From Piromyces finnis finn (Eukaryota > Fungi > Neocallimastigomycota), in NCBI GenBank assembly GCA_002104945.1, contig MCFH01000060.1, forward strand, positions 1-64,000: a stretch of DNA of 64,000 bases. Direction: 5' to 3'. Shown here piece by piece: positions 20,852 through 43,710 of this stretch. Numbering within the stretch: position 1 is the stretch's first letter; each line of letters starts with the position of its first letter. Made by a program: the position numbers and the translations under genes. The notes beneath the pieces were generated by a model. That model was not told the DNA's origin. It searched no databases and was given only the letters and a program-made list of their open reading frames with translations.

Positions 20852-20861
20852 AATGATTTAA

Positions 20862-20869
20862 TTTTTTTT
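20862..20869 (+). terminator. Pol III T-run terminator of tRNA-Ser
   Basis: T8 starting 11 bp after the tRNA 3' end. Confidence 0.7.
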
Positions 20870-21229
20870 AAAAATGTTAAAATTATAATGAAATAATTTT
20901 ATATTTTATTTACTATTAATTAATTATATAATTATATATTATTTAAATTTTTATGTATTAATTAAATTAATTATATGAAAAGTATAATTTTATTTAATAT
21001 TATATAAATATATATTTTTTACTATTATTAAAATGTAGTTCTTTTCATAATATAAGAAAAGACATTATTAAATAACTTGTATTAAATAATAATAAATATT
21101 AATAACAAATATTAATAAATAAATAATAATAAATAAATATAAAATAATATATATACATATTATACAAATATTTATTTATAAAGTGTTGGTGTTATATAAA
21201 ATATTATAATAATAATATTTAATCATAAA

Positions 21230-21244
21230 AGATTAAGAGTCTCA
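21230..21244 (+). other. PBS complementary to the anticodon arm of tRNA-Lys(CUU)
   Basis: AGATTAAGAGTCTCA; its reverse complement TGAGACTCTTAATCT is the conserved eukaryotic tRNA-Lys-CTT anticodon arm. Confidence 0.8.
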
Positions 21245-21258
21245 ATTGTCTCAAGAAA

Positions 21259-24200
21259 ATGTCTAATAATAAAAATAAAAATCTACTAAGTTCAAATATG
21301 GACCCTTCTAGTTTTATAGGAAAATTCCAAATAGAACTTAATAAAGAAAATTTTCAAGCTTGGCAGATCAAAGTCAGAGATATTTTAAGATGCTGCGGTT
21401 TGGAAGAATATATTGATGAAAATAAAACTCCAAAGATATATATAAAGAATATATCAGAGAGTGAAAAAGAAAATTATAAAGAAGTCCCACATGAGCCTAA
21501 CATGTACTATAATAAAAATGTAACAGATGAAACTCTTGCTATTGATAATAAAGTAAGAATGTTTATTAGAAGTACATTGGCACCAAAATCAGTTGAAGAT
21601 GTTCAAAGTAGAACACTTACTGGTTACCAAATATGGAAAACTTTAGAAAGTATATATATAGGAAACCAATCCAGTAAGAAAACTGACCTTATTAAAGAAG
21701 TGAATAGAATGAAATACAACCCACAAGATAGTATAGCCAGTTTTGTAAATAAACTAAATTTAAAATTTGAAACATTAGAATCCATGGGAGTCCATATAGA
21801 TGAAGAAGAAAAGGCCGCCGTTTTATACAGAGCTATGCCAAAACAATACCAATGGATAAATATATTCGATTATGAAGGTAACTGGACTTTATGTAGAGAA
21901 TATGTATCAAATAGAGTTCAGTCTGTTCAAAGGTCAGAAGAAAGGGAACGAAGTAATAGGCTTGGATTTAATCAAGTTTTTAGTAGTGAAAGTGGCTATG
22001 GAAATTATGATAATTATAATCATAAAAATAATAAATTTTCAAATTATAAAAATAAAAATAATAAAAATAAAAATGATATAATATGTCATTTTTGTAATAA
22101 AAGAGGCCACATTGAAAGAAACTGCATATTTAAAGAAAAATTAGCAAAAGAATATAATTCAAACAATAAAAATTATAAAAATAAACAAAATAAAAAATAT
22201 AAAAAGAAATATGCAGATGTAGTTACAAAACAAAGAAGTAACTACAAGGATATAACACCAAATTTATTCAACGTGGATTATGATTCTACATATGAAAAAG
22301 AATCAAACAGTGTTGTAAAAGTAAATTTTTCAAATAAAAAATATAAAAAGGTTATAAAATCAAAAGGGAACTTTAGTATGTGGATGCTAGATTCAGGAGC
22401 ATCAGTTCACCTTACAAACGATATTAAATTATTATATAAAATTAAAAGACATAAAGAACCAATTTACTATGCGGATGGTGAAGTTGGTTATTCTACACAT
22501 ATAGGCAACATAAAAGGCTACTTTAATAAAGAACAAATAATTTTAAAAAATGTTTTATATGTTCCAGATATTAAAAGGAATTTAATATCTATTTCAAATT
22601 TTGTTAAAGAAGGTCTTAATGTAAATTTTAAATATATAAATAATGCTGCCACAGCATTTATCCAAGATAAAAATAAAAATAATATATATGTATCAAGAGA
22701 AGATGAACATAACATATTTAATGTTTATATATCAAAGACAAAATTATTTAACTACCAAATACAAAATCCAATGTATTGTTATTCAATTAGGAAGTTAAAT
22801 AATGATGAAAAATTACATCTTTGGCATAGAAGATTAGGTCATTTTCATGCCAAAAGTATTGAAAATAAATTATTAAATATAAACATTAAAGATATTTGTG
22901 AAACATGTTCATTATCAAAATTAAAAAATCAACCATATCATAGTTCTACTAATAAAAGTACAGAAGTACTTCAATTAGTACATACTGATATAGTTGGACC
23001 CATTAACGCGTCATCTATATACGGTAATCATTATTTTATTACCTTTTTAGATGATTATTCAAGATATGGATGGGTAATTTTTATAAAAAATAAAAGTGAC
23101 GCGTTTAACGCGTTTAAAATATGGTATAATAAAGTTACCAATGAATTTAAAAAGAATATTACATATTTAAGAAGTGATAATGGTACAGAATATAAGTCTT
23201 TAAATTTTAAAAATTTTTGTGATACTCATGGTATTACACAACAATTCACTGTACCATATAATCCACAACAAAATGGACGCGCTGAAAGGTTTAATGGAGT
23301 ACTAATCCATGCAGCTACCACTATGATGCAAGATGCTAAATTATGTAGAAGATTCTGGGAAGACGCAGTCAGAACTGCCAATTATATACATAACAGGTTA
23401 CCTCACAATGGAAATGACTTGAAGGTACCCTATGAAATGTTATATAATATCCCAGTAGACTACAGTAAATTTCGTGTTTTTGGATGTAAAGTGTTACATC
23501 TTAAACGTAACACTGAAAAACACAAATTTGAAAGCACTTCGCTACCTGGCATATTTATTGGTTATGATGACACTTCTACCGGATTCAGAATTTTTGACTT
23601 AAATTCTTTTAAAATTGTCATCAAAAGAGTAGTTGAATTTTTAGAAGACCAACCAGGTAATTTTAATTTTGATGATAACGTCAAAAATGTCAATTTCATC
23701 GATTATGATTCATTAATCAATGAAATGGAGGGGGACGATAACGAAAGTCTTCAACAGGACATAGAAATTGGCATATCATCAAACATTAATAACAATGATT
23801 TTCCAAATAATTTTAATAAAATAAAATATAATGCCAACAATAACTATATCGGCATTAATAGTAATAATAATAAGGATAATATTATTTATAACAATAATAA
23901 TAAAGAAAACATTAAAAATTATAACATAAATGAAAATAACAATTTAAATATAAATAACAATTTAAATATAAATAACAATTTAAATGAAAATAACAATTTA
24001 AATGAAAATAATATTTTAAAAGAAAATAACGATTTAAACACAAATAATAATTTAAATGAAAATAATAATTTAAATGAAAATAACAATTCAAATAAAAACA
24101 ATAATTCAAATGAAAACGATAATCCAAATAAAAACAATATTTCAGATGAAAATAATAATTCAAATGAAAGTAATGATTTAAATAAAAATAAAATAAAAAA

Positions 24201-26385
24201 TAAAAATAAAATAAAAAATAAAAATAATAATACAAAAGAAGATAATAATTTAAATAAAACAAATAAAAATATTAATGAAATATATGATGATAATGATATT
24301 AATAACATAAATCATATAAATAAATTTAATGATAATAATGACGATAACAACGTTAATATTATTAATTCACATAATAAGAATAATATAAATAATAATATAA
24401 ATAATAACTTCATTAATAATATGAAAGACAATAACAGTTATAAAATTAAAAACAACAATAATAATATTCATAAAAAGAAAAATAAAAGAAAAGTAATCGA
24501 CAGTGACGAAGAAAGTGAAGATGAAAGTAAAATTAAAATTAAAAGAAATAAATTCTTAAACAAAGAAGAAAGGATAAATAAAATAATTGAAAGCGAAAGA
24601 AAATCTAAGAACAAAATTTCTTATAAGGCTAAAGACTTGGACAATGGAATTAGTTTATCAGAATTAAATAAAAATAAACAAAAAAATAATAACTCATTAA
24701 GCTATATTCCAAACCATTCACTAGATGTAGAACAAAGACAATATCCAAATTATCCAAGGAACAAAAGAAAAATTTTGGATAATAATGAAAAGTATACAAC
24801 TAGTAAAAGAATAAGAAAAGAAATAAATAACGTTGATAAATCATCAACGACAGATAACCAAATAACAGAACCAACAAGTTTTTTTGAAATCTTTAAGAGA
24901 AAAGATAAAAGAAGATGGCTTGACGCTATAAATGATGAATTAAACAATATGAAAGAACGCAAAGTATATGAAAAAATAAACAAAGTTCCACAAAATACTA
25001 ATGTAATTACCTCAAAATGGGTGTTCAAAATTAAAAGGGATAGCAAAGGAAACATTACCAAGTATAAAGCACGCTTAGTAGCTAGAGGATTCACTCAAGA
25101 ATACGGTACGGACTACAAAGAAACATTTTCTCCAACATTAAAACATGATTCACTAAGAATTCTTACAGCTATTTCAGCAGAAAAGAAATTTTATATACAT
25201 CAATTAGATATAAAGGCAGCTTATTTATATGCTGACTTAAATGAATGTATTTATATGTATGCTCCAGAAGGAGACTCTACTTACCGAAAAGGCTATTGGA
25301 AACTAAATAAGGCACTCTATGGTCTCAAGCAAGCAGCACGAGAATGGAATAATAATATAACTGATACTTTAACTAATATTGGATTTAAAAGACTGGTAAG
25401 TGAACCCTGTATTTTCGTTAAGAAAGATGATAACAATAATATAAAATGTTTGTTAGGAATATATGTCGATGATATCCTAATATCAGGTAACAATTATGAA
25501 ATAAATAAAACTAAAGAATTACTAAAGAAAAGATACAAAGTTACCGATATTGGATATGCAGATTTTATTATTGGAATTAAATTTGAAAAATTAAACAATG
25601 GATACTTACTTCACCAAGAAAGATACCTTAGAGATATCTTAAGAAAATTCAACTTAGAAAACTGTAAACCTTGCAAAACACCTAAACCAGCAAACGAAGT
25701 TGATGATAAACAAGAAAAATATAACCCAACAAAGTATCGTGCAGCCATTGGTAGTTTACTATATCTTGCTATATCTACTAGACCAGACATTTTATTTTCA
25801 GTCACCAAAGCAGCCAGAAAATCACAAGAACCTACTTTTAAAGACTGGGAGAATGTTATTCAAATTTTTAAATACCTCAAAGGAACCATTAATTACGGAT
25901 TGCTCTATTCAGGCGAAGCTTCTTTAAAGACCTTTGTAGACGCAGACTACGGTAGTGACAAAGTAACCAGAAGATCAACCACCGGATTTGTTTTCTTCAT
26001 GGGAAGTGGTCCCACGAGTTGGTTTTCGAAACTTCAACATTGTATTGCTACCTCTACAGCTGAGTCAGAATATTACAGCTTATGTGAGTGCGGAAAACAT
26101 TCACTTTGGTATGCAAACATACTTAATGAGTTAGGGATAACTCATAAATGTACTGTAATAAACATTGACAACCAGGCAGCAATTTATAATGCTGAAAATG
26201 ATACTATTAATCCAAAATCAAAACATATTGATATTAAGTATCATAAAATAAGAGAAATGGTAAAAGAGAAAAAAATTAAATTGGAATATATCAAGTCCTT
26301 AAATAACATTGCTGATGGTTTCACAAAATATTTGGATGCTACAAAAATGTCTATTTTTAGAAATAGTTTATTACATAAATATTAA
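21259..26385 (+). CDS. gag-pol: Copia gag-pol polyprotein, 1708 aa (gag, CCHC, protease, integrase, Asn-rich linker, RT, RNase H)
   Basis: CHFCNKRGHIERNC, LDSGAS, GAG-pre-integrase HLWHRRLGH, HTDIVGP/SDNGTEY, SKWVFKIK, YVDDIL, DADY...RRSTTG, IADGFTK. Integrase precedes RT. Confidence 0.96.
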   Translation: MSNNKNKNLLSSNMDPSSFIGKFQIELNKENFQAWQIKVRDILRCCGLEEYIDENKTPKIYIKNISESEKENYKEVPHEPNMYYNKNVTDETLAIDNKVRMFIRSTLAPKSVEDVQSRTLTGYQIWKTLESIYIGNQSSKKTDLIKEVNRMKYNPQDSIASFVNKLNLKFETLESMGVHIDEEEKAAVLYRAMPKQYQWINIFDYEGNWTLCREYVSNRVQSVQRSEERERSNRLGFNQVFSSESGYGNYDNYNHKNNKFSNYKNKNNKNKNDIICHFCNKRGHIERNCIFKEKLAKEYNSNNKNYKNKQNKKYKKKYADVVTKQRSNYKDITPNLFNVDYDSTYEKESNSVVKVNFSNKKYKKVIKSKGNFSMWMLDSGASVHLTNDIKLLYKIKRHKEPIYYADGEVGYSTHIGNIKGYFNKEQIILKNVLYVPDIKRNLISISNFVKEGLNVNFKYINNAATAFIQDKNKNNIYVSREDEHNIFNVYISKTKLFNYQIQNPMYCYSIRKLNNDEKLHLWHRRLGHFHAKSIENKLLNINIKDICETCSLSKLKNQPYHSSTNKSTEVLQLVHTDIVGPINASSIYGNHYFITFLDDYSRYGWVIFIKNKSDAFNAFKIWYNKVTNEFKKNITYLRSDNGTEYKSLNFKNFCDTHGITQQFTVPYNPQQNGRAERFNGVLIHAATTMMQDAKLCRRFWEDAVRTANYIHNRLPHNGNDLKVPYEMLYNIPVDYSKFRVFGCKVLHLKRNTEKHKFESTSLPGIFIGYDDTSTGFRIFDLNSFKIVIKRVVEFLEDQPGNFNFDDNVKNVNFIDYDSLINEMEGDDNESLQQDIEIGISSNINNNDFPNNFNKIKYNANNNYIGINSNNNKDNIIYNNNNKENIKNYNINENNNLNINNNLNINNNLNENNNLNENNILKENNDLNTNNNLNENNNLNENNNSNKNNNSNENDNPNKNNISDENNNSNESNDLNKNKIKNKNKIKNKNNNTKEDNNLNKTNKNINEIYDDNDINNINHINKFNDNNDDNNVNIINSHNKNNINNNINNNFINNMKDNNSYKIKNNNNNIHKKKNKRKVIDSDEESEDESKIKIKRNKFLNKEERINKIIESERKSKNKISYKAKDLDNGISLSELNKNKQKNNNSLSYIPNHSLDVEQRQYPNYPRNKRKILDNNEKYTTSKRIRKEINNVDKSSTTDNQITEPTSFFEIFKRKDKRRWLDAINDELNNMKERKVYEKINKVPQNTNVITSKWVFKIKRDSKGNITKYKARLVARGFTQEYGTDYKETFSPTLKHDSLRILTAISAEKKFYIHQLDIKAAYLYADLNECIYMYAPEGDSTYRKGYWKLNKALYGLKQAAREWNNNITDTLTNIGFKRLVSEPCIFVKKDDNNNIKCLLGIYVDDILISGNNYEINKTKELLKKRYKVTDIGYADFIIGIKFEKLNNGYLLHQERYLRDILRKFNLENCKPCKTPKPANEVDDKQEKYNPTKYRAAIGSLLYLAISTRPDILFSVTKAARKSQEPTFKDWENVIQIFKYLKGTINYGLLYSGEASLKTFVDADYGSDKVTRRSTTGFVFFMGSGPTSWFSKLQHCIATSTAESEYYSLCECGKHSLWYANILNELGITHKCTVINIDNQAAIYNAENDTINPKSKHIDIKYHKIREMVKEKKIKLEYIKSLNNIADGFTKYLDATKMSIFRNSLLHKY
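23912..24130 (+). repeat. Coding 18-bp tandem repeat (consensus about AATAACAATTTAAATGAA; NNNLNE)
   Basis: About 10 degenerate units visible in both DNA and translation. Confidence 0.85.
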
Positions 26386-26849
26386 ATGAATATTAAATGA
26401 ATATTAAATGAATATTAAATAAAAGTATTTATACTTTTGGGAGAATGTTAAAATTATAATGAAATAATTTTATATTTTATTTACTATTAATTAATTATAT
26501 AATTATATATTATTTAAATTTTTATGTATTAATTAAATTAATTATATGAAAAGTATAATTTTATTTAATATTATATAAATATATATTTTTTACTATTATT
26601 AAAATGTAGTTCTTTTCATAATATAAGAAAAGACATTATTAAATAACTTGTATTAAATAATAATAAATATTAATAACAAATATTAATAAATAAATAATAA
26701 TAAATAAATATAAAATAATATATATACATATTATACAAATATTTATTTATAAAGTGTTGGTGTTATATAAAATATTATAATAATAATATTTAATCATAAA
26801 AAAAAATATAAAAATAAATATATTTTAAAAAATTTAATAATAAATAATA

Positions 26850-26921
26850 AGGGGCGTTCCGGATTTGAACCGAAGACCTATTGATCTGCAGTCAATTGCT
26901 CTACCGCTGAGCTAACACCCC
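26850..26921 (-). tRNA. tRNA-Cys (anticodon GCA)
   Basis: Minus strand reads GGGGTGTTAGCTCAGCGGTAGAGCAATTGACTGCAGATCAATAGGTCTTCGGTTCAAATCCGGAACGCCCC; full cloverleaf; T6 run at 26827-32. Confidence 0.97.
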
Positions 26922-28011
26922 TTTTTATTAATTTGTTTCAAAAAGCGATTTTTTATTAAAGAAAAGTGTGGTAAGCACACTAGTTATATTAATTAATAAA
27001 TATAATACGCTTTCCTATTGAAGGCGTAAAGCTAATAATATTTATATAAAGAAATTTAAATAATATTTTTATTTTAGCAATAACTTAATATCAGCATATA
27101 TTAAGTTATTAAAAATATTAAAATTTTTAAAGTTTTAGGTTTTATAGGAGTTTATAAATTTTATTAACTTTAGGTTAAAAAATTACTAACGCTAAAGCTT
27201 CGTAATTTTTGTCAATTTTTGTTCTTTTTATACATGAACAATTTTAATTATTACATTTTTTAATTTTAATTAATTATTATCTAATTATAAAATATTTAAT
27301 TTTTATAAATTAATAATTAATATAATTATTGTAAATAGTTAATAAATTTAAATTAAAATTTTTAATAATAAAATTTTAATAATTTTAAAAAATTTAATAA
27401 TTTCAAATATTAGAAATTTTATACTTTGAAATTTTTTAATAAAAATTTAAAAAATAAATTTTTTCAAATTTTCAAATTTTCAAATTTTAAAAAAAATTTT
27501 TAATTTTTTCCATGTGTCCAAATTTTTTAAATTTTTATATATGTTATTGTGACACTGCCCGTCCTAAGGGTCGTTTCGCCGGACGACCCAAAAAATTATG
27601 GACACTGGCACGTCATAATAATTTGGACATGGACACTTCCACGACACTTAGAAGAATTTTGAGAATTTTCAAAAAATGGAAATTCTCAATTTTTGAAAAA
27701 ATCTAAGTGTTGAAAAAGTGAAGTGTAAAAGTGTTCAAGAAAAGTTGAGAGGGTATCACGTGGATTCTTCAGAAATGGAGACTACACGTGAAGGTTAGGG
27801 AAATGATATGACTCGAGGGGAAGCGGATTTTGGGGTGCGGAAAAGGTTGCGAAATTTGAGGGTTGAGGGCAAAGGCGAAAGAGGGTGGTTGGGTAGCGGA
27901 ATAGTGGTTGGTAGTTGTAGTGGTGGCGACTAGTGGGTAGCGGAGTTGTGGGTAGTAGGTGGGGTAGTGGCGATAGGTGGGTAGTGAAGGAGTAAGGGTG
28001 GTAGACACTAG

Positions 28012-31000
28012 TTAAGAATCTGGGACGGAATTGGTGAATTGTTGGTAAGCGCGACGTTGGTAATCAGCTAAAAGGGTGCTGTAGTAGTCATCCTTATCAA
28101 TGGTGTCAGCATTGATCCAACGTTGAGATAAGTCAGTAAAAGTGACTAAGTACTCGTAAAAATGACCCGATTTACGAGAACTAAGGATCTTGGTGATTTC
28201 ATTGGAGTTGGGATGGTTGAGCAATAGATGGTGAGGAGTGGGATGATATGGTTCGAGTTCACTGATGTGGAATACGGGGTAGACACGAGGGAAAGGTGAG
28301 GTAGATAAATCAAGGCGGTAGTTGAGCTTAGATTCATCGACACCAGTGACCTTGTATGGACCATACTTGCGGGATTGGAGCTTGAACGCTAATGGAGGAT
28401 GATAATTAGCGGGTTTGCGAAGCCAAACAAGATCGTGGACCTTGAAGCGCTTAAAGTTGTGATAAAGGTGCTACTGCTTTTCTTAACCATATTTTCAAAC
28501 TTCACGGATTCCCCTTATCTATTGTTACAGACCGTGGTACTCAGTTCGAAAGTCGTCTTTGGTCCCACTTGATGGAATTCTTTAATATCGATCACCACTC
28601 TGCTACTACTGGCCATCACCGCACTGTTGGACAAGTAGAACGTAACAACGACTACGTTGAAACTTATCTTCGTTGCTACTTAGCTCAATTTGATGATCTC
28701 AGTTGGATGGATCATTTGTACTTAGCTGAATTTTGCTACAACAATTCCATCCATGCTTCCACCAAACAACCACCATTTCTCTCTGTTTATAATTATCAAG
28801 TTCACGCAAACCCACAAGTTGCAGACCTTGTTTCTTCTTTAGGACTTCATCCCCTCATCGATAGCTTCTCCCATAACTTAGCTGACCTTAAGCATACTCT
28901 CGAAGTCAGTCGTACCCGTTATCTCGATGAAAAGGATAAGCAGTTTCCTTAGCAGTGGGTAAATGTTTGAACCCAACTAAGTGTATCATCTTAGTTAAGT
29001 AGCAAGTAGTAACCATTATGGTACCTTGATGGTGGTTCGGATTGGTAGAGTCGAATGGTAAGGTAGAGTTACAAGGTCTTGATGGTAAGTCCGTGATAAA
29101 GTCCATTTGTAGGTGTTGCCATGGAAGTTCCGGAAGAGGGACACGGATCATATTACCATAAGGAGCATGGTGATCGGTTTTCATTGCCTTGCATACACTA
29201 CAGCTTCGAATATAAGACTCGACATCTTGACGCATATTAACCCAATAGAAATTACGTTTAAGAATGTCATAAGTCTTATCGACTCCCAAGTGACCGGCAG
29301 TGGGTGCATCATGGTTGAGCTTAATAACTAAGAGTCTTAGTTGACTTGGAACATATACTTGCTCCGGATGTTTGGTTCTTATTAAAAGGCCATCTTGAAG
29401 AATCCAAGGATGATCACTATTTGGAACTTCAAGATCCTTAAGAATCTGACAAGCGGTTTCATCTTGAAGGTAGCACTGCTTAATGTCGTCAATGAAGCTA
29501 GTTTCCATAGAGAAGTAGCATTCATCTTCGTTGAATCCTTCTAATTGGGTTGGTTTAAGTAAGGATGATTCACTTATATCCTTACCAACTGTGAGCATAT
29601 GGTCGGATCTACGAGAGAGAGCATCAGCTTTACCATTTTTCTTTCCTGGTCGATAGATAATCTTGAAATCAAAGGTAGCAAAGTATTCTTGCCAACGAGC
29701 TTGTCTTTGGGATAGAAGTTGCGGTTTGGTAGCAAAAAGCAAGTTTTGATGGTCTGAATAAACGGTAATAGGATATTTTGCACCTTGAAGTAAATGACGC
29801 CATTCGATAAAAGCTTGACGAATTGCTAAGAGTTCCTTTTCGGTGATAGAGTAATTAAGTTCTGCATCATGAAGGGTTTTAGAAAAGTAATAAACTGGAT
29901 GCAGGTCTCCATCATCACCTTTTTGTGAAAGTACTCCCCCGATAGCAAAGTCACTTGCGTCACATTCAACTATGAATGGTTTATCGTGATCAGGACAAAG
30001 TAAAACTGGAGCTGAAGTAAGAAATTCTTTAAGTTGATTAAATGCTCTATTACACTCGTCTGTCCATATGAAAGTGACGCCTTTCTTAGTTAAGTTGTAT
30101 AATGGTTTTGCAATTTTAGAAAAGTTAGAGATAAAGCGACGGTAGTAATTGCATAACCCTAAGAAGGACTGAACTTCTTTCACAGTAGTGGGGATAGGCC
30201 AGTTCTTAACTGCTTCAATTTTGTGAGGATCAGTTTTGATTCCCTCCTTACTGATTACGTGACCCAAAAATTCGATTTCAGCTTTGTGAAACTCACATTT
30301 TTTGAGTTTCGCAACTAAGTTGTTTTCAATGATTAATTGAAGAACATTTCTAACATGTTGAACATGTTCTTCAAGGGTCTTGGAGTAGATAATGATATCA
30401 TCCAAGTACACTTGAACGTACTTATTAATTTGATCACTAAAGATATCATTAATGAAAGCTTGGAAAACTGCAGGAGCATTAGTTAGTCCAAAAGGCATGA
30501 CTAAGTACTCAAAGTGACCAAATGCCGTCCTGAATGCAGTCTTGTATTCGTCACCTTCTTTAATCCTAATTAAATTATAAGCTGACTTGAGGTCTAACTT
30601 AGTGAAATAGTTAGCACCTTTCATTGATTCAAAGACTGATAGGATTAAAGGTAGCGGATAGGCATTCTTGATAGTTTGGTCGTTGAGCTTGCGATAGTCA
30701 ACGCAAAATCTGAGACTACCATCCTTCTTATCTTGGAGTAGAACTGGATGTCCAGCAGGAGATCGGGATTTTCTAATGAATCCTTTATTCAAGTTTTCTT
30801 CAATATACTCCTTAATAAATTGACGTTCAGTAGGAGTAGTTGGATAAATTGGCCCATAAAATAATGAAGCATTAGGTTTCAAATCGATAGAACAATCATA
30901 TACACGATGTTCAGGAAGTTCATCGGCTCGTTCTTCATTGAAGGCTTCATATAAATCTTCATATTCCAAAGGTATACCGTTGATAGATTCTACTAGTTCA

Positions 31001-32895
31001 GGATTCTGATCATCGGCTATGAAGACTGTTTCTGTTGGAATGGAAGTTGATTTATCCAGATTTGAGTCTTCGAGTTCTGTGATAAACATAACTTCATGAA
31101 GAGGTGTAGATTTCTTCAAATCATTCCTAAAGTTAGGAGATTTAATCTCAGATCCATTATGGTTGGAGAAAGGAACAGGACCAATTTTAACTGTAAAGGA
31201 ATGGTCAGGTTGTGTTAAGATACAGAAGAAGTTGGTTTTCATGAACTTAGAACCTAGGAGAATCGAAGAAGGAAGCTGATCAGCTACGTGGCATCGAAGT
31301 TTGTATTGACGAACCTCTTCTCGAGTTCCTCCTAAAGAAGATAAGTTCATTACAATGTTGAACTCTTCTGTGATGTAATGCATTAGGACATTACCTCCCA
31401 TGACCTTTACAACAGTATCAGCTGGTATGGTCTTAATTCCTAGTTTCTTCACTAAATCCATATGGATTACATTGGTAGTAGAGCCAGAATCTAAGAGAGA
31501 CGAAGTGATAATCTGTCTAGATCCTTTAGAAGTTTTTACACTAGTCTTCACGATGGGATACTTCTCCGGATCAGGATTTGGTAGCTCTAAAATATCTTGC
31601 TCTTCTACTTCACAGAGATAGCTGGAGTATGAAGTACCATTATTAGGTTTAGTACTTTTATTGGGATTTTGGGTACTAGACTTGCTATCCAAGTTACTGG
31701 AGCCTTTTCCTTTTTGGTTAGATGGGCGGTTGTTGTTATTGTTATTCCTTTGGTTGTTATTACGATTGTTAGTCTTGTTAGGGTTCTTGGAATAAAGACT
31801 GCCATGAATACCTAATAAATTAGCTATTAAGGGCTCTTTGTCCTTGTAGTTGGCTTGTCTTTCCAAAGTATCATCGTAATAAGTATCCTTGGAAGCATCA
31901 TATTTGATTAGAAGATTCTTCAGTTCTTCTAACGTCTGTCTATCCGAAGTTAATTTACTAAAGGCGTGGTTCACGGTAGGTCGAACTTGGAAAAGCATGA
32001 TGGTTAATTGAATGTCTTCGGAACATCCAATTAATTTGACATATTGGGAGAATTTTCCTAAGTATTCGGAAGCTTTTCCCCAACTATGTCTGAGCTTCAT
32101 CAGGTCGATTTTGGTGATGTTGATATCCTTCGGGTTAAGGAATCTCTTACCCAAAGCTTCGTAAAGAACCTTTCTATTCGGATGAGATTCCTGGAAGTCT
32201 GCTTGTTCAACATCGTACCAATCTGCAGCATCACCAGTAAGACAATCTTCAATGAAGTTTACTTTCACAGCTTCATTGTTTCCATAGAACTTGATGTGTC
32301 TTAGGAAGTGATGTTCGCATCGACGGATGAATCTACGTAATTGAATACTTTCTCCTGAGTAAGAAAGCATTTTTTCAGCGACGTTTGGAGGCGAAGCATC
32401 TCCCATGATGACGTCACCGTCAGGTTCGTGAGGGGTAGTAGCAGAAGGAGTAACGGGAGTAGACAACTCATCAACTCTTTGAGTAGCCTTGCTGATATGA
32501 GCTTTGATATCAGCGAGTTGATTGTCTTTCCTAGCATCGTTGACTTCTAAGGTAGCCATCTTACCCATAATAACTTGAGTAGAGTTTTCCAAAACAGTCA
32601 AACGATCATTGAGACTTTCGTTTTCCCTTCTGGTAGCTTGAATATCAACCTTTAACTGATTGATATTCCCAGTTAAGGTAGCAGTTAAAGACTCAATGAG
32701 GGCCTTGAGATCCTCATTAGTAGTTGGCTTCTGAGTAGGATTACTCGTAGAAGCATTAGCTTGTCCGGAATGATTAGGCATCTTTGATTTTCTTACGGGA
32801 GTATTTCCTGGGGAACGTTCTTTCTTGGTAGTTTGTAGGCGGTTAAAAAATTCTTTTGTATCCACTTTAATAGGTGTAAGTGGAGATTTTTCCAT
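28012..32895 (-). pseudogene. gag-pol: gag-pol polyprotein with GPY/F motif and chromodomain, disrupted by inversion of 28469-28942
   Basis: The main ORF breaks at HLPTAKETA. The next integrase segment (FLNHIFKLHG...VERNN...YLDEKDK) reads on the plus strand at 28473-28938. The C-terminus (HLYHNFKRF...YGPYKV...EITKILSSRKSGHFYEYLVTF) resumes on minus from 28468 to 28012. Confidence 0.92.
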
Positions 32896-32965
32896 TAAAC
32901 TTTAATTATTATATTTAGTTATTAATAATTACTAACTAATTGGTGCTTAGCGCACTTTTATAATA

Positions 32966-32976
32966 AGCGTTAGTAA
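32966..32976 (-). other. Self-priming PBS (11 nt)
   Basis: TTACTAACGCT (minus) directly follows the 5' LTR and is complementary to LTR bases 33224-33234. Confidence 0.85.
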
Positions 32977-33597
32977 TGTCAAAAAGCGATTTGTTATTAA
33001 AGAAAAGTGTGGTAAGCACACTAGTTATATTAATTAATAAATATAATACGCTTTCCTATTGAAGGCGTAAAGCTAATAATATTTATATAAAGAAATTTAA
33101 ATAATATTTTTATTTTAGCAATAACTTAATATCAGCATATATTAAGTTATTAAAAATATTAAAATTTTTAAAGTTTTAGGTTTTATAGGAGTTTATAAAT
33201 TTTATTAACTTTAGGTTAAAAAATTACTAACGCTAAAGCTTCGTAATTTTTGTCAATTTTTGTTCTTTTTATACATGAACAATTTTAATTATTACATTTT
33301 TTAATTTTAATTAATTATTATCTAATTATAAAATATTTAATTTTTATAAATTAATAATTAATATAATTATTGTAAATAGTTAATAAATTTAAATTAAAAT
33401 TTTTAATAATAAAATTTTAATAATTTTAAAAAATTTAATAATTTCAAATATTAGAAATTTTATACTTTGAAATTTTTTAATAAAAATTTAAAAAATAAAT
33501 TTTTTCAAATTTTCAAATTTTCAAATTTTAAAAAAATTTTTAATTTTTTCCATGTGTCCAAATTTTCTAAATTTTTATATATGTTATTGTGACAATT

Positions 33598-34908
33598 TGT
33601 AAAAAATATTTGTGACTGTAAAATATTGTATTAATAGAATAATGTATTTAATACGTATTTAAAATAATGTACAATGTATTGAATTAATGTACCGTAAATC
33701 TTTACAAGATTTATATCACAATACATTAACATAAATCTATGTGAAATATAAAGTTACGATAAAATAATGTATTACAATACATTAACATAAATTTATGTAA
33801 ATTTAATTTTATGATAAGATAAAGTTTTTGATGATAAAATAAATTTTTTAAATTAAATAATTTTTAACCAATAAATATTTTAGATAAGAAAAAAATTTTT
33901 TTTTAAACTAAGCCTCAAAATTAGAAATAAATAAATTAAATATATGTTTGAAATATAATCAACCACATAGTAAATAAATCAAAACTTTATTTTAAGTTTA
34001 GAAAATTCTTTAGTAAATAAATTGAATTTAAATAGTTTAATACAAATAATTTCTTTTAATAAATGCATAAATGTAAACAATGTAAAATTATAATATTAAA
34101 ACATGTATATTAGAATTTATTCAATTTATTTAAAAAGTATAAATAAAGAAAATTTTTCAACTATTGAAACGATAGTTGGAAAATCGTATAGTTTAGTTAT
34201 ATAGTTAGTTTAGATTATTAGTTTTAATTTAATTAGTTAATAATTGATTACCTAGTGAGGGCTCTGGTGAAATAACCTTCACGGTAAAGTAATCAACGGT
34301 TGTTTTAGTTTAGTTTAGTTTAATATAATTTAATAAATAAAAAGTTTAATAATTAATAAATTTATAACTAGTGTTTAGTTTAGTTAGTGTATACAAACCT
34401 GAACTTAGTTTAAAATATTTTACAGTGACCATAAGTTTGCCCACAAATATTTCAATTGAAACCATATATTCTGGTCACCATTTATTGGCCAGATATATGT
34501 ATAACCATATATTAATGGTTATTAATTAAATAGGAAGTTTATTTGCTTTACCCAATCAAGTGGTAAAGAAAATAAACTAATATAGTTAAATAGTATAGTT
34601 AAAACTAACGTTAAATACTTTAGCGTTAGTATTAGAGTAAATTAGTAACTATAATAATAATTAATGTATATAATTATAATTAATAAATAAAAGATATAAT
34701 TAATATAGAATTATTTAAGTAAACATTATTTCATAAAATCTTTATACATTTGTTTGTAATTATTTTAGTGTTATAATATTTATTTTATTTCTTTTATTAT
34801 TTTTTATAAAACTTTGTTTAGTTATTAACTCGTATAGAGAGGTAATAACTAACTTAATTAACTAAATTATACAACTTATTAACTAATATTATAAAAACAC
34901 CTTTTACA
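33598..34908 (+). mobile_element. Solo LTR family G (copy G3), containing D3
   Basis: TSD TAATT: right copy at 34909-13, left copy displaced to 26929-33 by A2. Confidence 0.88.
33617..34424 (+). mobile_element. Solo LTR family D (copy D3)
   Basis: TSD GTGAC at 33612-16 and 34425-29. Confidence 0.9.
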
Positions 34909-34915
34909 TAATTGT

Positions 34916-35721
34916 TGGTAAATAATAAAATTAATAAATATAAAATTATTATTAAACCTGATTTTTAAGTTAACCCTAAAAGTAACTTAAAACAAGTTAT
35001 AGTTTAATTAAGTACTTTACCAAAATTCTTAAATAAAATTAATCCTAAACACTGCATATATTTTGATTATTGAAAGAAAATAATAAACTTTAATTAATCG
35101 AGATCAAGATATATAACTCTTGTTAAATTAATTGTTAAATATTTAATAACTTCGTTAGTAAATTACACTTTAAAAGTAAACAAATATAATAATTCATGTT
35201 ATAAAATAATATAATTAAACACCTTTATTAAAACATTAAAAATAATTATTACTTTAATTAATTGTAAAATAAACAACTTTTTATATTCTTTAACTTTTAA
35301 TTATTTCTTTTATTGTTATTTCTAATTACTTTTATTACTTTTATTGTAAATAGTTATTAATTTTATTGTTTTAATGTAAATAGTTTAAATCTAAAAGAAA
35401 ATATAAATACATGTAAATATTCTTATTTTAATCATTATTATTATTATTAATAAAGAAATATTATATAGTTAGATTAATATTTTATAATTTTAATAATCAC
35501 TTTTATACTTAAATAAATAAAATTTTAAATATTTAAATATTAGAAAAACGAGTGTTTTTAATAAAACAATTTAGTGTCTTAATAAAACAATTTTATTAAT
35601 TTTTATAAAAACGATTTTAAATCTTAATCAATATAACTTATATAGTTATAACAAAAGATATAATATAATAATCACTTTTTGAAGTAAAATTCAAAATTAA
35701 GATTATTATCAAATTATATCA
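34916..35721 (+). mobile_element. Solo LTR family K (TGATA-type)
   Basis: TGGTA...TATCA; 4-bp TSD TTGT at 34912-15 and 35722-25; partial similarity to 47340-47500. Confidence 0.72.
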
Positions 35722-35722
35722 T

Positions 35723-36333
35723 TGTCACAATAACATATATAAAAATTTAAAAAATTTGGACACATGGAAAAAATTAAAAATTTTTTTAAAATTTGAAAAT
35801 TTGAAAATTTGAAAAAATTTATTTTTTAAATTTTTATTAAAAAATTTCAAATTATAAAATTTCTAATATTTGAAATTATTAAATTTTTTTTAAAATTTTA
35901 TTATTAAAAATTTTATTTTAAATTTATTAACTCTTTACAATAATTATATTAATTATTAGTTTATAAAAATTAAATATTTTATAATTAGACAATAATTAAT
36001 TAAAATTAAAAAATGTAATAATTAAAATTGTTCATGTATAAAAAGAACAAAAATTGACAAAAATTACGAAGCTTTAGCGTTAGTAATTTTTTAACCTAAA
36101 GTTAATAAAATTTATAAACTCCTATAAAACCTAAAACTTTAAAAATTTTAATATTTTTAATAACTTAATATATGCTGATATTAAGTTATTGCTAAAATAA
36201 AAATATTATTTAATTTTCTTTATATAAATATTATTAGCTTTACGCCTTCAATAGGAAAGCGTATTATATTTGTTAATTAATATAACTAGTATGCTTACCA
36301 CACTTTTCTTTAATAAAAAATCGCTTTTTGACA
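35723..36333 (+). mobile_element. Solo LTR family A (copy A3)
   Basis: Same sequence family as A1/A2; TSD TTAAT (right copy 36334-38; left copy reconstructable after removing K, G3 and A2). Confidence 0.92.
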
Positions 36334-36341
36334 TTAATTTG

Positions 36342-37169
36342 TGTTAAGGAATGAACATAAATAGTTAAAATTGCTATAACTCAATTATGAACTATTTACA
36401 TTCCTTACTACTGTTTAACTCTATTTTTGAATTATAAAATTATATAATAATTTTTATACATTTTCTTATTAATTAATTATATTTTATTATATAGTTATAT
36501 TATTTGTATATAGTTATTTCATTACTTTTAATATTAGTCTTATTATAATGTTTTATTCTTATAAAATTTTACTTAATTTTTATTATTAAAATAGTTATAG
36601 GTATTTTATTAATATTTAAGGTTCATTTTATTAATTAACTTTATTGTATAATATTTTATAATTTAAAATTATGACATAAAAATTTATTATAATTTTTACT
36701 AAAAGAGGCAACTGTTACACCCAAAACAGAAGATACCTCGACAGAAAAATTATTATTTATGTCTAAAAAAGGGCATAATTAATTGAATAATATAATTTTA
36801 TTATATGTTATAATTATATGATATGCAAAAATGTTACACATATCATAAATTAAAAATTTATTAGTTATAAATTAAAAATTTTTCTATTCGAATATTAAGA
36901 GATTATTCATAATATATATTAAGGATTTAATTAATATATGTTACAGTGAATGATCCATATACTATGAATGAAATCAATTTAAATCCTTAGCTATCCAAAA
37001 CCATTAAATTTCAAATAATGGATAGTTGGAAAAAGTACGAGGATTTTTGAGAAAAATTTTAAAAATTGAAAAATCAAAAATAAATTAAATGAATAAAAAT
37101 TAAAATTAAATAAATTTTTATTTTTATAACTATTCAAGTGTTTTGTGATATCTTATTTGAACCGTAGCA
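36342..37169 (+). mobile_element. Solo LTR family L
   Basis: Matches the 3' LTR of the element at 1-10338; 4-bp TSD TTTG at 36338-41 and 37170-73. Confidence 0.92.
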
Positions 37170-37176
37170 TTTGTTG

Positions 37177-37857
37177 TGTAAGAATTTAATAAATAATTTT
37201 AATTATATATGTACATTCTTAACTACAATGTAATAATACACTGTAAGTAATATAATAATATAACTATATTCACAAAATGAGTAATACGTATCTTTAATGT
37301 TTTGTTTTATTCTTATTTTTAAATTTTTGAATAATAATTTTTTTAAAAAATTTTATTAAAACTTCTCTTAATAAGTTTTGAGTTTATTTTTTCTTACAAA
37401 GAAAAAATAATAACTCTTGAATTTTTTAATTAAATTCAAGAGTTGTTTTATTTATAAGAATTTTAAAATTTTGGGTTAAATTAAAGAATTTTCTAGTCTG
37501 ACAAATAAATCTTCTAGGGAAAGACTAGATAAGAAAACCCTAGAAGGATTTCGATTAATAATCTATTCTTATTAATCACCGAATAATTAAATCAAAACCT
37601 ATTTGTGATAGGAAAAATATTTAATATCCGGTTCCTATCAATTTTACTTTAATTTTAATTTAGATAATAAAATATACTAAATAATTAAATAAAATGTTTA
37701 ATATAATTTAAAATAAAATTACAATTTAATTTACATTACACATATTACATAATAAGGATTGTTACATTTATAAAATATTAATAAAATAAAACATGAAAAA
37801 TGTATACATTTTAATAAGAAATATAGAATTACTTAAGTTTAATTCTAATTTCTTACA
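37177..37857 (+). mobile_element. Solo LTR family M (copy M2)
   Basis: TGTAAGAAT...ATTTCTTACA; TSD TGTTG at 37172-76 and 37858-62. Confidence 0.85.
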
Positions 37858-38649
37858 TGTTGATACAAGATGCATAGAAAAATATAATATTTTAAGTATT
37901 TCATGAATAATATCTAATCCTTTTATAAATTGTATATCAATTACTAGTGTTAATAATAATTAAACTATATTAGTATAAATTATTATGACGCAAATGTTAC
38001 ACATATATTAGAATAATTAATTACACAAGAAACGAAAAGATATAAAAATAGTGATAAAGAACAATATATAAAAGAAGAAAAAAAACTTTTCATATATAAA
38101 TAATATTTGATATTTTAGTTTTAAGTATAAGTTCTATTTTATTTTATTTTAGTTACAGTTTATTTTAGTTTAGTTTTAGGTCACTAATTACGTATTTAGT
38201 ATTTATTTATTATATTTAATTCAGTTTAAAATATTAATTATAAAAGAAAAGAATAATTATTGTTTATTTTTATTATTTCAAAAAGTTATATTTTATTATT
38301 AATAAGAATTTTATCAACATATTTTTATATTTACATTTTATATTTAAGTATTTATATTCATTAAACAATAACTTTCGATTCTACTAGTATTGAACGTTAT
38401 TAATGTTATAATTATAATCATAATAATAATAATAATTAAATAAAGAAACTTTAAACCAAAATCTATTTAATTATATTATTATAAAATTTATTATTTTTAT
38501 TATTTGTTTTTATTATTTATTTTTATTATTATAAAATAGAAATAAATACAATATTATCTAATATATTATTCAACTCTCATTCCCTATTGCTAACGTTCAC
38601 AATTATATTTTATTTATGGTGTTTTTGAAATATATTGCATCATAAAATT

Positions 38650-38666
38650 TGGTGGAGAATCCGGGC
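38650..38666 (+). other. PBS complementary to a tRNA-Ala 3' end
   Basis: TGGTGGAGAATCCGGGC; reverse complement GCCCGGATTCTCCACCA resembles eukaryotic tRNA-Ala(AGC) 3' ends. Confidence 0.8.
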
Positions 38667-38799
38667 GTGGTAATACTGAAGTAATATGAAAACAGTTATA
38701 ATAATATGAGATTTATAAAGATAGGAAAACATAATAATAAATATTATAATATATATATATAAATATAAAAAAAAAAAGAGAAAAGAAAAGGAAAAGAAA

Positions 38800-39926
38800 A
38801 TGGATCCGTTTGAAATAATAAACATGCTTCCATTGTTGGATAACTTTGGAAAGGATATTGATAATTGGATCCAAGAATTTAGTGAAATTATGGAAATGTA
38901 TGAAATAATTAGTCCAAGGCGAATATTTACTTTTATAAAGGAATGTGTTAATGAAGATGTAAAGTATATACTCGAAGAATATAAAATTAATTATGGAAAA
39001 TATCCAACCTTTGATGATATACAAAAAATAATTGAAGAATATTTAAATATAACACAAAATGATAAATTCAATATTTTATTATCATTGAAAATAAAAAATA
39101 ATGAAAGAATAAAGCTATTTAATTATCGCGTAAGAATAAAATATAATTTATTAGATGAAAATTATAAAAAACTTTTTAATGTTAATAATTATGTTGAAAT
39201 GCTAAAAAGTAGACCATATATTCAAATGTTCTATTAAATGATTGTAAAACTCTTGAAGAAGCTTTTAAAGTTGCAGAGTTATCTTCAAAAGTTGAGGAAT
39301 ATAATGTATTTAATAATGAAGTAAATTATTCTTTTGGTTCAATTATGAATATTAATATGACAACTTTAAATCCAAGAATTAATGATATTAATATTAATAG
39401 TAATGATGATTGTGAAAAAAATATGGATTTATCAAATGTAAAAAATGAAATAGAAAATATAATAGAAGATGAAAATGAAGCTGATACATGTAATGAAAAT
39501 TTTAATAATAAATATGAGGACATGGAATGTAATAATAATTTATTAAATTCAATAAACCTAAGTGATTGTGATGAAGATAAAATTTTAAAACTTCAAGATA
39601 AAATACTTAATAATAAAATATTAGAAGATTATAAATATTTACGTAATAAAAAGATTAAAAAACGTTTAGAAAGCATAATTAATGGAGTTGTTATTGAAGA
39701 TAAAAATACCAATGATGAAAATAATATTTATAAAAATAATTATATTAGAGATGCTTTAAAGAATTATTGTCAATTATTAATAGTTAATCATAAATATAAT
39801 AAAACAGAAATAGATACAATGCAAAGTAAAATAAAAGAAAATTTTTCATTTAATTATGGAAATAATAGAAAGGATACCAAAATGTTAGAAAGGAACTATA
39901 GGTATAAGAGAAAAAGAAAACGATAA
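38800..39926 (+). pseudogene. gag-like ORF with one frameshift near 39220
   Basis: ORFs 38800-39237 and 39345-39926 join through an alternative frame (SNVLLNDCKTLEEAFKVAEL, a capsid-like end). Located between PBS and PPT. No pol. Confidence 0.65.
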
Positions 39927-40637
39927 ATACTTGAAATATAAATTTTATTTTTATTTATTATATATTTAGTATAAGAACAATATAAAAACCTATAATTTTA
40001 TTAATCCTTTGTTGACTTCAAGGGACGAAGTCTCATCTAAAGTGGGGGCATCTTGATACGTGACGAACAGAAAATACTACTTTTGGTAGAAATTCCAGGT
40101 TAATTCATATAAGGGTTAAGATAATAATAAATTAATAATAACTTTAATTAATAATGAAATTAATTAATATGAAATTAATTAAAAAAAAATATTTAATATG
40201 TACTAATATAAATATAATTAATAATTAAAAAATTAAAATGATGTTCTTGATTTTGTAATTAAGTTCCAAAGATAATAAGATATAATAAAATGAGAAATTT
40301 AGTAGTAGTTTAGTAATATTAATAGTGAATAAGTAGTATATTTATATAGGAAAGATAGTTATTTTAAATATGTATTATTAATAATAAATAAATGTAAAAA
40401 TACTAATTATAATATATTTTAATAAAGATAAATATTTAATAATAATAAAAGGCTTATTTTGTTTATAATAATAATAATAATAATAACAATAAATAATAAT
40501 AAATAAGTAAATAAATACATAATAACTATATCACATAATTATTAATAACTGGAATATATTATTTCAGCAATATTCCTTATTACCACAACCTAAAAATAAA
40601 TAATATTATTATGATATTTTATTTTATAACGTATCAT

Positions 40638-41261
40638 TGTCAAAAAGCGATTTTTAATTAAAGAAAAGTGTGGTAAGCACATTAGTTATATTAATTAACA
40701 AATATAATACGCTTTCCTATTGAAGGCGTAAAGCTAATAATATTTATATAAAGAAAATTAAATAATATTTTTATTTTAGCAATAACTTAATATCAGCATA
40801 TATTAAGTTATTAAAAATATTAAAATTTTTAAAGTTTTAGGTTTTATAGGAGTTTATAAATTTTATTAACTTTAAGTTAAAAAAAATTCCTAACGCTAAA
40901 GCTTCGTAATTTTTGTCAATTTTTGTTCTTTTTATACTTGAACAATTTTAATTATTACATTTTTTAATTTTAATTAATTATTATCTAATTATAAAATATT
41001 TAATTTTTATAAATTAATAATTAATATAATTATTGTAAATAGTTAATAAATAAATTTAAAATAAAATTTTTAATAATAAAATTTTAATAATTTTAAAAAA
41101 TTTAATAATTTCAAATATTAGAAATTTTATACTTTGAAATTTTTTAATAAAAATTTAAAAAATAAATTTTTTCAAATTTTCAAATTTTCAAATTTTAAAA
41201 AAATTTTTAATTTTTTCCATGTGTCCAAATTTTTTAAATTTTTATATATGTTATTGTGACA
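40638..41261 (-). mobile_element. Solo LTR family A (copy A4)
   Basis: Inverted family A LTR; TSD TAATT (right copy 41262-66). Confidence 0.92.
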
Positions 41262-41320
41262 TAATTTGTAATACGAGGAGGATATTATCTTAATTCTATA
41301 TTTTACTATAGAAAGTGATA

Positions 41321-42321
41321 TGTGAAGATATTAACTGGATTTAAAACAAATTCAGATAATATCTAATTAATTAAACATAATAATTATAATTAAATGATTT
41401 CAATGATTATTTTAAAACACCTTTAAAAGTCACCTTTTAAATTTTGATTCAGCAAAAGGGTTATGATTTCAAAAATTTAATATCAATACACTATAACCCT
41501 TAACCAAAAATAAACAAACACGAAACAAAGCGTAACTCGCCAAAAACGAACGCTACGGCTATAAGTACTACGGTTGTGGAACTAAGTTTATTAGAAAGCT
41601 TAAGGAAAAAGCAATATTTTGGTACAATCGCGGTCATTCTAACTGGTCATTTAAGAAAGATATGGTCATTTGAAGATTTTAATAAGTAAATTAAAATCAA
41701 TATGATATCAAGTATGGATCATAGACATTTCTTATGACTTGACGAAAATTAAAAATATATCAATAGAAATTTTAATTATATTAATTTAATTAATGATAGT
41801 GACTGTTACTAAAAATAGAACTAAACCATTTAGGTGTAACAGTTAACATTTATAAATTAAATAATTCTAATTATTATAAAATAGGTTAATGGATCAAGTG
41901 TTTAAATGATTAATCATGTTTATTTTATTTTATTTATTTTATGTCATGACAAAACAAACAAACAAACAAACAAACAATCTTATTATGTTATTAATATATT
42001 ACATGTAATACTTTATTTTTATCAATTTAATAATCTGAACAAAGAATATAAAATAGAATGAATTGAATTTGATTTTAATTCTTTGTAAAGATTATAGTTA
42101 TAATCTTAATTATATAGTTATTAAATATATTATCATTTATATTATTATTACTAAATAAATAAAATTTTATAAAAAAGTTATTCTAAAAAATAAATATTAA
42201 TTTTTCATTTGGAAGTTTAAAGTGTTATTTTATATTTAAATTTAATTTCTTAAAAAACATATTTACTATATAATTAATAACATTCTGACCTGGCCGCATA
42301 ACCAAATCCCAAAACTTAACA
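41321..42321 (+). mobile_element. Solo LTR family F (copy F3)
   Basis: TSD TGATA at 41316-20 and 42322-26. Confidence 0.9.
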
Positions 42322-42669
42322 TGATAATATCTGTATCTAAAAATTTATAAATAAAAATAAGGAAAATAAAAATAGAATAAATGATTTTTATACTTGTTCA
42401 TTTGCAAGTGTTAGTTAGTTTTTAATATAAAATGTTATTTTATTTAATTATAAAATTATTATATTATCATATTATTTAATAACTCTAGTATTATTAAATA
42501 ATTAAAATTTAATACATCTAGTATGTATTATAAATGTTGTAAAATAAATATTGTTTTATTAAGTATAAATATCTAATTTTTCTCTCTTGGATAATTAGTA
42601 ACCATAATATATAAATTTAATATAACTATATCTAATTTTTATGGATTATTAGGAACATCTTTTAAAAAA

Positions 42670-42825
<156 letters not shown>

Positions 42826-42858
42826 TTATAATTTATAAATTTAATTATTTATCATTTG

Positions 42859-42997
42859 TGATACAATAGAGAATATTATCATAATTCTATATTTTACTAT
42901 AGAAAGTGATATGTCACGAATACTAGTGAAATATACAATTTCAAGATCACTTGAAATTGTAGATTTCACTTATAAAATTTCAAAATCAACAATATTA
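42859..42997 (+). mobile_element. Truncated J LTR (42859-42911) carrying a truncated H LTR (from 42912)
   Basis: The J start matches 41269-41320. TGTCACGAATACTAGTG is the inverted end of H1. Both are cut off at about 42997. Confidence 0.75.
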
Positions 42998-42999
42998 TT

Positions 43000-43710
43000 A
43001 TCTCTGGTGGACCATGCCTAGCAATTACCTCAGAAATTTTATAACTTCTTCTGATTTAATGTTTGGAATAGCCTTTGCTTCAGGCCATTTTGTAAAATAG
43101 TCAACTAAAGTTATAATATAATTATTACCTTGTTTTGTTTCTGGTAATGGTCCTACGATATCTAGTCCTACTCTTGTAAATGGCCTTTCAACAGGAGTAA
43201 TATTATTTTTCGTGTTCTTTGGTAGGGGTTTAGGTCTGAATAGTTGGCATTTGTGGCAAGATTTTACCCACATCTTCACATCATTCCAGATTCCTGGCCA
43301 ATAGTAGGACTGTAACATTCTAAGTGTAGTCTTCTCGGCACCTTCGTGTCCTATATTATGAGCTCTATCTATTACATCTTTTTTTTATCTTCTTCTCTAT
43401 ATATAACTTTCAAATACATATCATTCTTTTTGTAGTATAAAATGTTATCTATGATTTGATAATTTTTACTAAAATATTTTATTATACCTTCCGGTAGGTC
43501 TAAATCTTTAGGTTTAAATTCATTTAATATTGCGTTAATTGTTAATAGAACTCCTTCATTCTTTTTCAATGGTAGTCGGGACAGTGCATCTGCGAAAACA
43601 TTCTTTTTACCTTTTTCATATTTAATTATAATATTGTATTTATTGAATTCCTCGATCCATCTTAGGTGTCTTCCTTTTACTGGTAAACTTTTATTGAAAA
43701 ATTCTATTAA
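43000..43710 (-). pseudogene. Gypsy pol fragment (RNase H end and integrase N-terminal half), frameshifted
   Basis: HLRWIEEF...NVFADALSRL, HNIGHEG...YYWP...CHKCQ, GLDIVGPLP, DYFTKWPEA. Confidence 0.85.

Follow-up and report, generated by a model that had tools for sequence, protein, structure and literature searches.

What has built up some 16 kb of long terminal repeat (LTR) sequence immediately upstream of a single tRNA gene? Position-specific targeting of genes transcribed by RNA polymerase III (Pol III) is a classic 'safe haven' strategy and, as far as we know, it has been characterized in detail in budding yeast and social amoebae only. In this work, we analyzed a tRNA-Cys(GCA) gene of the gut fungus Piromyces finnis, which lies within a stretch of 64,000 nucleotides (hereafter the window, positions 1-64000 of contig C190) of a very AT-rich genome (assembly of 56,455,805 bases in 232 contigs). 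An initial annotation of this DNA had described, upstream of the gene, a pile of 13 LTR-retrotransposon layers linked by a chain of target-site duplications (TSDs), and had read it as Pol III-directed integration of the kind known for yeast Ty3. Our results confirm that the stack of serial LTR insertions upstream of tRNA-Cys is real, and the pile very probably arose through integration directed to the Pol III transcription complex of this one gene. The features discussed are collected in Table 1.

As the tRNA-Cys gene is on the minus strand, its upstream side runs rightward in the window. The ARAGORN call is one base pair too long, and sister genes are called as the 72-nt form; the acceptor stem GGGGTGT/ACGCCCC together with the discriminator T at 26849 sets the mature +1 at 26921, which bears out the numbering used originally, with 26922 as -1. 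Units were delimited by self-comparison of the window and by comparison with 20 related loci, and every unit of 26923-43000 is multi-copy in the genome. A script then excised the elements from the tRNA outward, nested ones first, and compared the bases before and after each element at each step. The test covered 11 of the 13 elements, J4 and H2 being truncated and their remainder absent from the window. Exact TSDs of 4 or 5 bp were found for all 11, and excision reduces 26923-42858 to 13 native bases with J4 next to them, positions and sequences being as first listed. Two 4-mers drawn at random from the region are identical with a probability of 0.012 and two 5-mers with a probability of 0.0045, giving a joint chance probability of about 8e-25 for 11 exact TSDs. 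When the boundaries were moved by up to 8 bp, exact matches appeared in 10 of 3066 trials (0.3%). In addition, the LTR termini of all families agree with independent copies elsewhere.

It might be argued that such a pile results from segmental duplication, gene conversion or misassembly of repeated LTRs, with no serial integration at all. The adjacent arrangements G+K, M+N, N+A and J+F do recur elsewhere at 92-98% identity, and the DNA runs containing the region are limited to one sample, probably that from which the assembly was made, and one gut metagenome. Nevertheless, the recurrent junctions differ precisely in their spacer or TSD bases, as independent insertions would, the flanks beside different tRNA genes differ, and a misjoin would break the TSD chain, which is intact throughout. 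We therefore consider this explanation highly improbable.

The pile comprises ten families, one more than the approximate count of nine given initially, and it is indeed composed mostly of solo LTRs, nine of its layers (G3, D3, K, A3, L, M2, A4, J3 and F3) being of this kind and two (J4 and H2) being fragments; the start of J4 and the target of H2 were obtained at the same positions as before. Family termini, read from independent copies, are as follows (5' end/3' end): A, TGTC/GACA; G, TGTAAGAA/TTTTACA; D, TGTAAAAT/TTTTACA; K, TGATAAAT/TATATCA; L, TGTTAAGG/GTAGCA; M, TGTAAGAA/TCTTACA; J, TGATAC/TTATCA; F, TGTGAAG/TTAACA; and H, TGTCACG at the 5' end. In element N the two LTRs differ, the 5' LTR (N5) having TGATACAAG/GCATCA and the 3' LTR (N3) TGATACGTG/GTATCA. 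The ends of G3 are common to 17 full copies. The tRNA-facing LTR ends vary at bases 2-3 at many loci (TGA, TAA or TGG in K, whose window copy has this end at 34916-34918); in the window, J3 has TAATAC in place of TGATAC (41269-41270) and A2 has TTTC in place of TGTC (26936).

Once the layers are collapsed, their targets fall into three base-exact registers. At least four unlike LTR lineages (A; G/M; K/J/N; L) entered through a staggered cut of 4 or 5 bp at -7 to -17 from the mature tRNA 5' end, and these proximal (class-I) targets all lie within the 13 native bases or the first 1-3 bases of the neighboring LTR, the same site having been used again and again. Family D cuts at -27 to -31, and families F and H (class II) at -62 to -67. 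The element orientation is free: A3 is inverted relative to A2 and A4, and G and K occur in either orientation beside tRNA genes.

The distance from LTR to tRNA was then examined in the window and in 40 loci, among them the 20 related loci and 20 that hold the best-scoring tRNA, tRNA-Arg(TCT); the latter were picked by tRNA score alone, regardless of LTRs, and three termini were read by eye. Among the free-standing tRNA genes, 24 of 28 have a proximal LTR end, at -12 to -17 in 23 cases and at -23 in one. In six more cases the gene is the second member of a tandem pair (Glu-Arg or Ser-Met) with 10 bp between the two, so that its upstream side is the partner gene. Considering the tRNA-Arg(TCT) loci separately, an LTR end lies 12-23 bases upstream of the first gene in 14 of 16 non-redundant Pol III units. 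The first base of F and H is found at -65 to -68 at six or more independent genes, as well as inside J3 and J4 of the collapsed window, although their 5-bp targets differ in sequence and the host is a G, J, K, A or other LTR. The D register of -27 to -31 lies inside G here and inside J at a second stack, upstream of a tRNA-Ser(GCT) on C46 (locus L018), where the excision test succeeded for all five elements (K, G, D, J and G2). Furthermore, a junction of the form G end, 7 bp, K start is present at five loci with five different 7-mers, a variation that would fit two families each measuring from the tRNA but not a copied arrangement. Coordinates from whole-genome searches place the end of one L LTR 14 bp ahead of a tRNA on C190, and other L LTRs lie 93-95 bp before tRNAs, roughly the distance that a presumed tandem partner plus spacer would account for.

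Taken together, these results support the Ty3-like reading of the initial annotation. Integration is position-specific at many tRNA genes, ~10-17 bp upstream of the mature 5' ends, and the target is set by distance independently of sequence, the TSD sequences differing between tRNA genes. The 13-layer pile is typical of tRNA genes throughout this genome. A similar distribution could in principle arise if insertion were untargeted and only the copies in a harmless zone near tRNA genes survived selection, and the surroundings here are gene-poor, with the first host gene on the right, for an HSF-type factor, starting near 56.3 kb. Survivorship cannot, however, yield single-base registers (-7 to -17, -27 to -31 and -62 to -67) at dozens of genes in unrelated host sequence, and we give this explanation very little credence.

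Some further features of the sampled loci are worth recording. At least 34 tRNA-Arg(TCT) copies have identical scores, and the 11-16 bp upstream flanks that they retain fall into a few similar groups (TTCTA..., CACTTT...). Tandem tRNA pairs no more than 10 bp apart occur at L023, L025, L027 and L028 (Glu-Arg) and at L007 and L018 (Ser-Met), with the LTRs upstream of the first gene; the tRNA-Glu in L028-L030 is shortened by ~12 bp. At L038 and L039 (C176, 173 kb and 246 kb), two tRNA-Arg genes have the same 14-bp flank followed by a J LTR at -15, which is uninterrupted at one gene and split by an F insertion at -67 at the other, a natural before-and-after pair. At L006 (C13, position ~5028), an H LTR lies 7 bp past the end of an F LTR, an arrangement that suggests that class-II elements also pile up on their own register.

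How might such a pile be built? By analogy with Ty3, the class-I integrases may be tethered to the Pol III initiation complex, the tether probably being TFIIIB. With the promoter internal to the gene, only ~13 upstream bases would need to survive an insertion; the complex, positioned from that internal promoter, would therefore re-form over the new LTR end and offer the same target again. Each newcomer would displace earlier elements outward by its own length, and recombination between LTRs would later leave mostly solo LTRs. D, F and H would insert into whichever LTR was proximal at the time, hence their nested appearance. If yeast footprints are a guide, the registers at about -10 and -64 would flank the TFIIIB footprint.

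The order of the layers can be read from the TSDs, because a TSD copy is made beside its element and any sequence now lying between the two must have arrived later. The right TSD copy of K takes in the first three bases (TGT) of A3, that of M2 the first two bases (TG) of N, and that of N the first three bases (TGT) of A4; likewise, A2 is younger than G3 since its TSD contains the first two bases (TG) of G3. In all, eight relations are forced: (i) G3 after A3, (ii) K after A3, (iii) D3 after G3, (iv) A2 after G3, (v) M2 after N, (vi) N after A4, (vii) L after A4, and (viii) F3 after J3. In every one of them the tRNA-proximal element is the younger.

Several observations weigh against an unbroken, strictly ordered history of Pol III-directed insertions. 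First, five junctions (G3/K, A3/L, L/M2, A4/J3 and J3/J4) are compatible with either order; there, proximal insertion is the parsimonious order given the hotspot. Second, N has two unrelated LTRs within one exact TSD, so that at least one layer has probably been remodeled by recombination. Third, the stack ends on its outer side in a breakpoint rather than an intact flank: near 43000, where other H copies continue, H2 breaks off and gives way to a truncated gypsy-type pol (minus strand), and a search of the window found neither the missing part of J4 nor the right end of H2. The truncation of H2 and J4 and the junction with pol therefore mark the outer edge as a rearrangement breakpoint. Fourth, identity to the nearest relative does not change monotonically with distance from the tRNA (L ~92-96%, A4 99%, N5 99.7%, A3 98%). 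Fifth, support for the assembly consists of the internal consistency of the TSD chain only. Finally, the TFIIIB tether and the place of the Pol III start site are suggested by analogy with Ty3, and any current activity of the elements would be conjecture.

Some of these points could be accommodated if the tRNA-directed insertions were real but the array were no strict chronology, either because elements entered distally at LTR-LTR junctions or because layers were exchanged or merged by recombination. The unforced junctions, the deletion breakpoint in which H2 and J4 terminate and the non-monotonic divergence would all fit, as would N, whose structure is compatible with recombination between two elements stacked at a re-used 4-bp target. 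The order of families also differs between stacks, K lying within G at L018 while G lies within K here. On the other hand, every order relation that the TSDs force points one way, distal entry needs a chance hit on the 0-3 bases between two LTRs whereas the proximal site is a demonstrated hotspot, and unlike family orders are expected if the families were active simultaneously. We thus regard a disordered array as unlikely and retain serial proximal insertion as the explanation of the pile.

The differing K/G order indicates that the families overlapped in time. A family stratigraphy common to the stacks is ruled out by the differing K/G and A/J orders. The pile is accordingly a polarized record, as first proposed, in the sense that its layers are ordered, and not a family-by-family stratigraphy, the families having been active simultaneously. 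As regards age, terminal branches computed from local copies are 0-0.3% for A2, 0.4% for K, 0.5% for A3, 0.1-0.4% for N and 0.6% for A4, while for F3 (at most 2.4%) and L (at most 4.8%) poor sampling gives upper bounds. Within family A the ranking A2 < A3 < A4 is as predicted, with only 0-4 substitutions behind it, and there is no overall trend of divergence with distance from the tRNA. L has no genomic relative closer than 96% identity and A4 matches several copies at 99%, yet the TSDs force L to be the younger of the two; the apparently greater age of L and F3 is due only to close relatives being unsampled. The stack is young overall, with few substitutions, and for this reason divergence cannot date its layers.

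Table 1. Features of the window in and around the tRNA-Cys stack (targets are numbered from the mature tRNA-Cys 5' end in the collapsed sequence; bp counts for nested hosts are given without the inserted element).
Feature	Coordinates	Strand	Description	TSD	Target
tRNA-Ser(TGA)	20770-20851	+	ARAGORN call		
tRNA-Cys(GCA)	26849-26922	-	Stack anchor; ARAGORN call; mature 5' end most likely 26921		
Native upstream remnant	26923-26935		13 T-rich bases ending ATTTG; sequence left when the stack is collapsed by excision		
A2	26936-33594	-	Full-length Ty3/gypsy-type element	ATTTG (26931-26935, 33595-33599)	-10 to -14
G3	33598-34908		Solo LTR, 498 bp without D3	TAATT (right copy 34909-34913)	-8 to -12
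D3	33617-34424	+	808-bp solo LTR nested in G3	GTGAC	-27 to -31
K	34916-35721	+	806-bp solo LTR; 24 full copies	TTGT	-11 to -14
A3	35723-36333	+	Family A solo LTR	TTAAT	-7 to -11
L	36342-37169		828-bp solo LTR	TTTG	-11 to -14
M2	37177-37857		681-bp solo LTR; second copy in L033, 98%	TGTTG	-13 to -17
N	37861-40636	+	2.8-kb non-autonomous element	TTGT	-12 to -15
A4	40638-41261	-	Family A solo LTR	TAATT	-8 to -12
J3	41269-42854		Solo LTR, 580 bp without F3; (ATT)n run	TTTG	-11 to -14
F3	41321-42321		1001-bp solo LTR nested in J3 (class II)	TGATA	-62 to -66
J4	42859-42911		First 53 bp of a J LTR; starts at -15 in the collapsed sequence		
H2	42912-43000		First ~88 bp of an H LTR inside J4, after TGATA		-63 to -67

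Two layers retain internal sequence of their own. A2 (6.66 kb) is the innermost and youngest layer and the only full-length autonomous one. Its direct LTRs (26936-27554 and 32977-33594, 617-619 bp) differ by ~0.3% substitutions, and its Pfam matches come in the order Asp_protease_2, RVT_1, RT_RNaseH_2, Integrase_H2C2, a weak rve and SH3_Tf2-1. Judged from its sequence, both the LTRs with their TSD and the gag, protease, reverse transcriptase, RNase H and integrase order are those of a Ty3/gypsy-type LTR retrotransposon. No Pfam chromo match was obtained at E <= 0.1 for the C-terminus of the integrase (residues encoded by 28018-28470), where a divergent chromodomain is possible. A 474-bp segment of A2 that holds the integrase core (28469-28942, plus strand) is inverted with respect to both the remaining pol sequence and a near-identical copy on C191 (L002); the borders of the inversion have only the short inverted microhomology ACTGCTT in common.

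As for N, its LTRs (N5, 37861-38642, 782 bp; N3, 40054-40636, 583 bp) are unrelated, no similarity between them exceeding that of shuffled sequences. The element has motifs resembling a primer-binding site and a polypurine tract, and two gag-like open reading frames (38800-39237 and 39345-39926). Possibly, N is a recombinant of two elements stacked at one re-used target. The same hybrid with two unlike LTRs recurs on C16 (L001, 4326-7104) with a TSD of its own, TCTT.

Beyond the stack, a full-length Ty1/copia-type element (window 20856-26800, with a 1708-amino-acid open reading frame at 21259-26385) fills the space between tRNA-Ser and tRNA-Cys, two convergent genes whose 3' ends face each other; it starts ~22 bp past tRNA-Ser. 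To the right of the pile, an uninterrupted reading frame of 1507 amino acids (48635-53158, minus strand) has RVT_1 as its sole Pfam match. The first recognizable host gene on that side encodes a protein with an HSF-type DNA-binding domain (56268-58007, minus strand), and transposon-derived sequence therefore seems to extend from 26.9 kb to beyond 53 kb.

Comparable behavior has been described in other organisms. In Saccharomyces cerevisiae, Ty3 inserts at a distance of 1-4 bp from the Pol III start site (~12-15 bp ahead of the mature tRNA), guided by contacts between its integrase and TFIIIB (PMC5006619, PMC5911963). Ty3, with its sigma LTRs, resembles the elements described here in being of Ty3/gypsy type, in using both orientations, in its 5-bp TSD (as in our family A) and in leaving solo LTRs beside tRNA genes (PMC5006619, PMC5911963). 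The differences are several: (i) about seven families, representing at least four unlike LTR lineages, use the proximal site here, some of them with 4-bp TSDs, (ii) nearly every sampled tRNA gene is occupied, with piles of up to 13 layers and 16 kb, and (iii) two further exact registers exist, a dependence on TFIIIB being suggested here only by analogy. The clusters that Ty1, Ty2 and Ty4 form upstream of Pol III genes in yeast likewise contain repeated and nested insertions, with solo LTRs in large numbers. Ty1 uses a window of ~750 bp patterned by nucleosomes (PMC5006619), and because it has no single-base registers, TSDs do not allow the yeast clusters to be traced back to a single site.

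In the dictyostelids, DGLT-A, also of Ty3/gypsy type, inserts 13-33 bp (mean 15 bp) upstream of tRNA genes and is regarded as convergent with Ty3 in the relevant section of PMC5006619. Its proximal register (~15 bp upstream) is like the one reported here; our host is a fungus, the window of insertion is narrower and the copy number much higher, and the DGLT-A section of PMC5006619 mentions no serial stacks of such depth. The dictyostelid non-LTR elements TRE5-A and NLTR-B use a fixed distal register ~50 bp upstream of tRNA genes (passages of PMC5006619 and PMC5911963), comparable to the register of F and H at -62 to -67, although the distance is ~64 bp in our case. As LTR elements bounded by TG..CA and flanked by 5-bp TSDs, F and H are inserted by an integrase and not by target-primed reverse transcription. 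A literature search found no paper that ties retrotransposons of Neocallimastigomycota or Piromyces to tRNA genes, in keeping with the initial remark that no description of the kind was known for gut fungi. This is, then, Pol III-directed integration of the Ty3/DGLT-A type in a lineage for which we found no description of it.

It is tempting to speculate further that three distinct registers, each exact to the base (about -10, -29 and -64), have evolved on the Pol III pre-initiation complex among the LTR retrotransposons of gut fungi, in some ten families of at least four unlike lineages, that the register at -64 is the LTR counterpart of the amoebal TRE5 site, and that nearly all tRNA genes are saturated, their stacks forming a genome-wide ordered record as well as an in vivo TFIIIB ruler. 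We put forward this broader proposal tentatively, as plausible but somewhat short of probable.

The locus presents an extreme form of Pol III-gene targeting, with many unrelated LTR families at one site, two more exact registers and almost every sampled tRNA gene occupied. The pattern accounts for much of how repeats are arranged in this genome, in which tRNA genes stand at the tips of LTR piles of 10-30 kb, a circumstance relevant to annotation and assembly. With these elements, new natural examples become available for studying how an integrase recognizes the Pol III complex and whether such targeting arose convergently or was already present in the fungal ancestor. If the reading proposed here is true, the stacks would give an ordered record of transposition and, at the same time, a ruler for the TFIIIB footprint in vivo in an early-diverging fungus.

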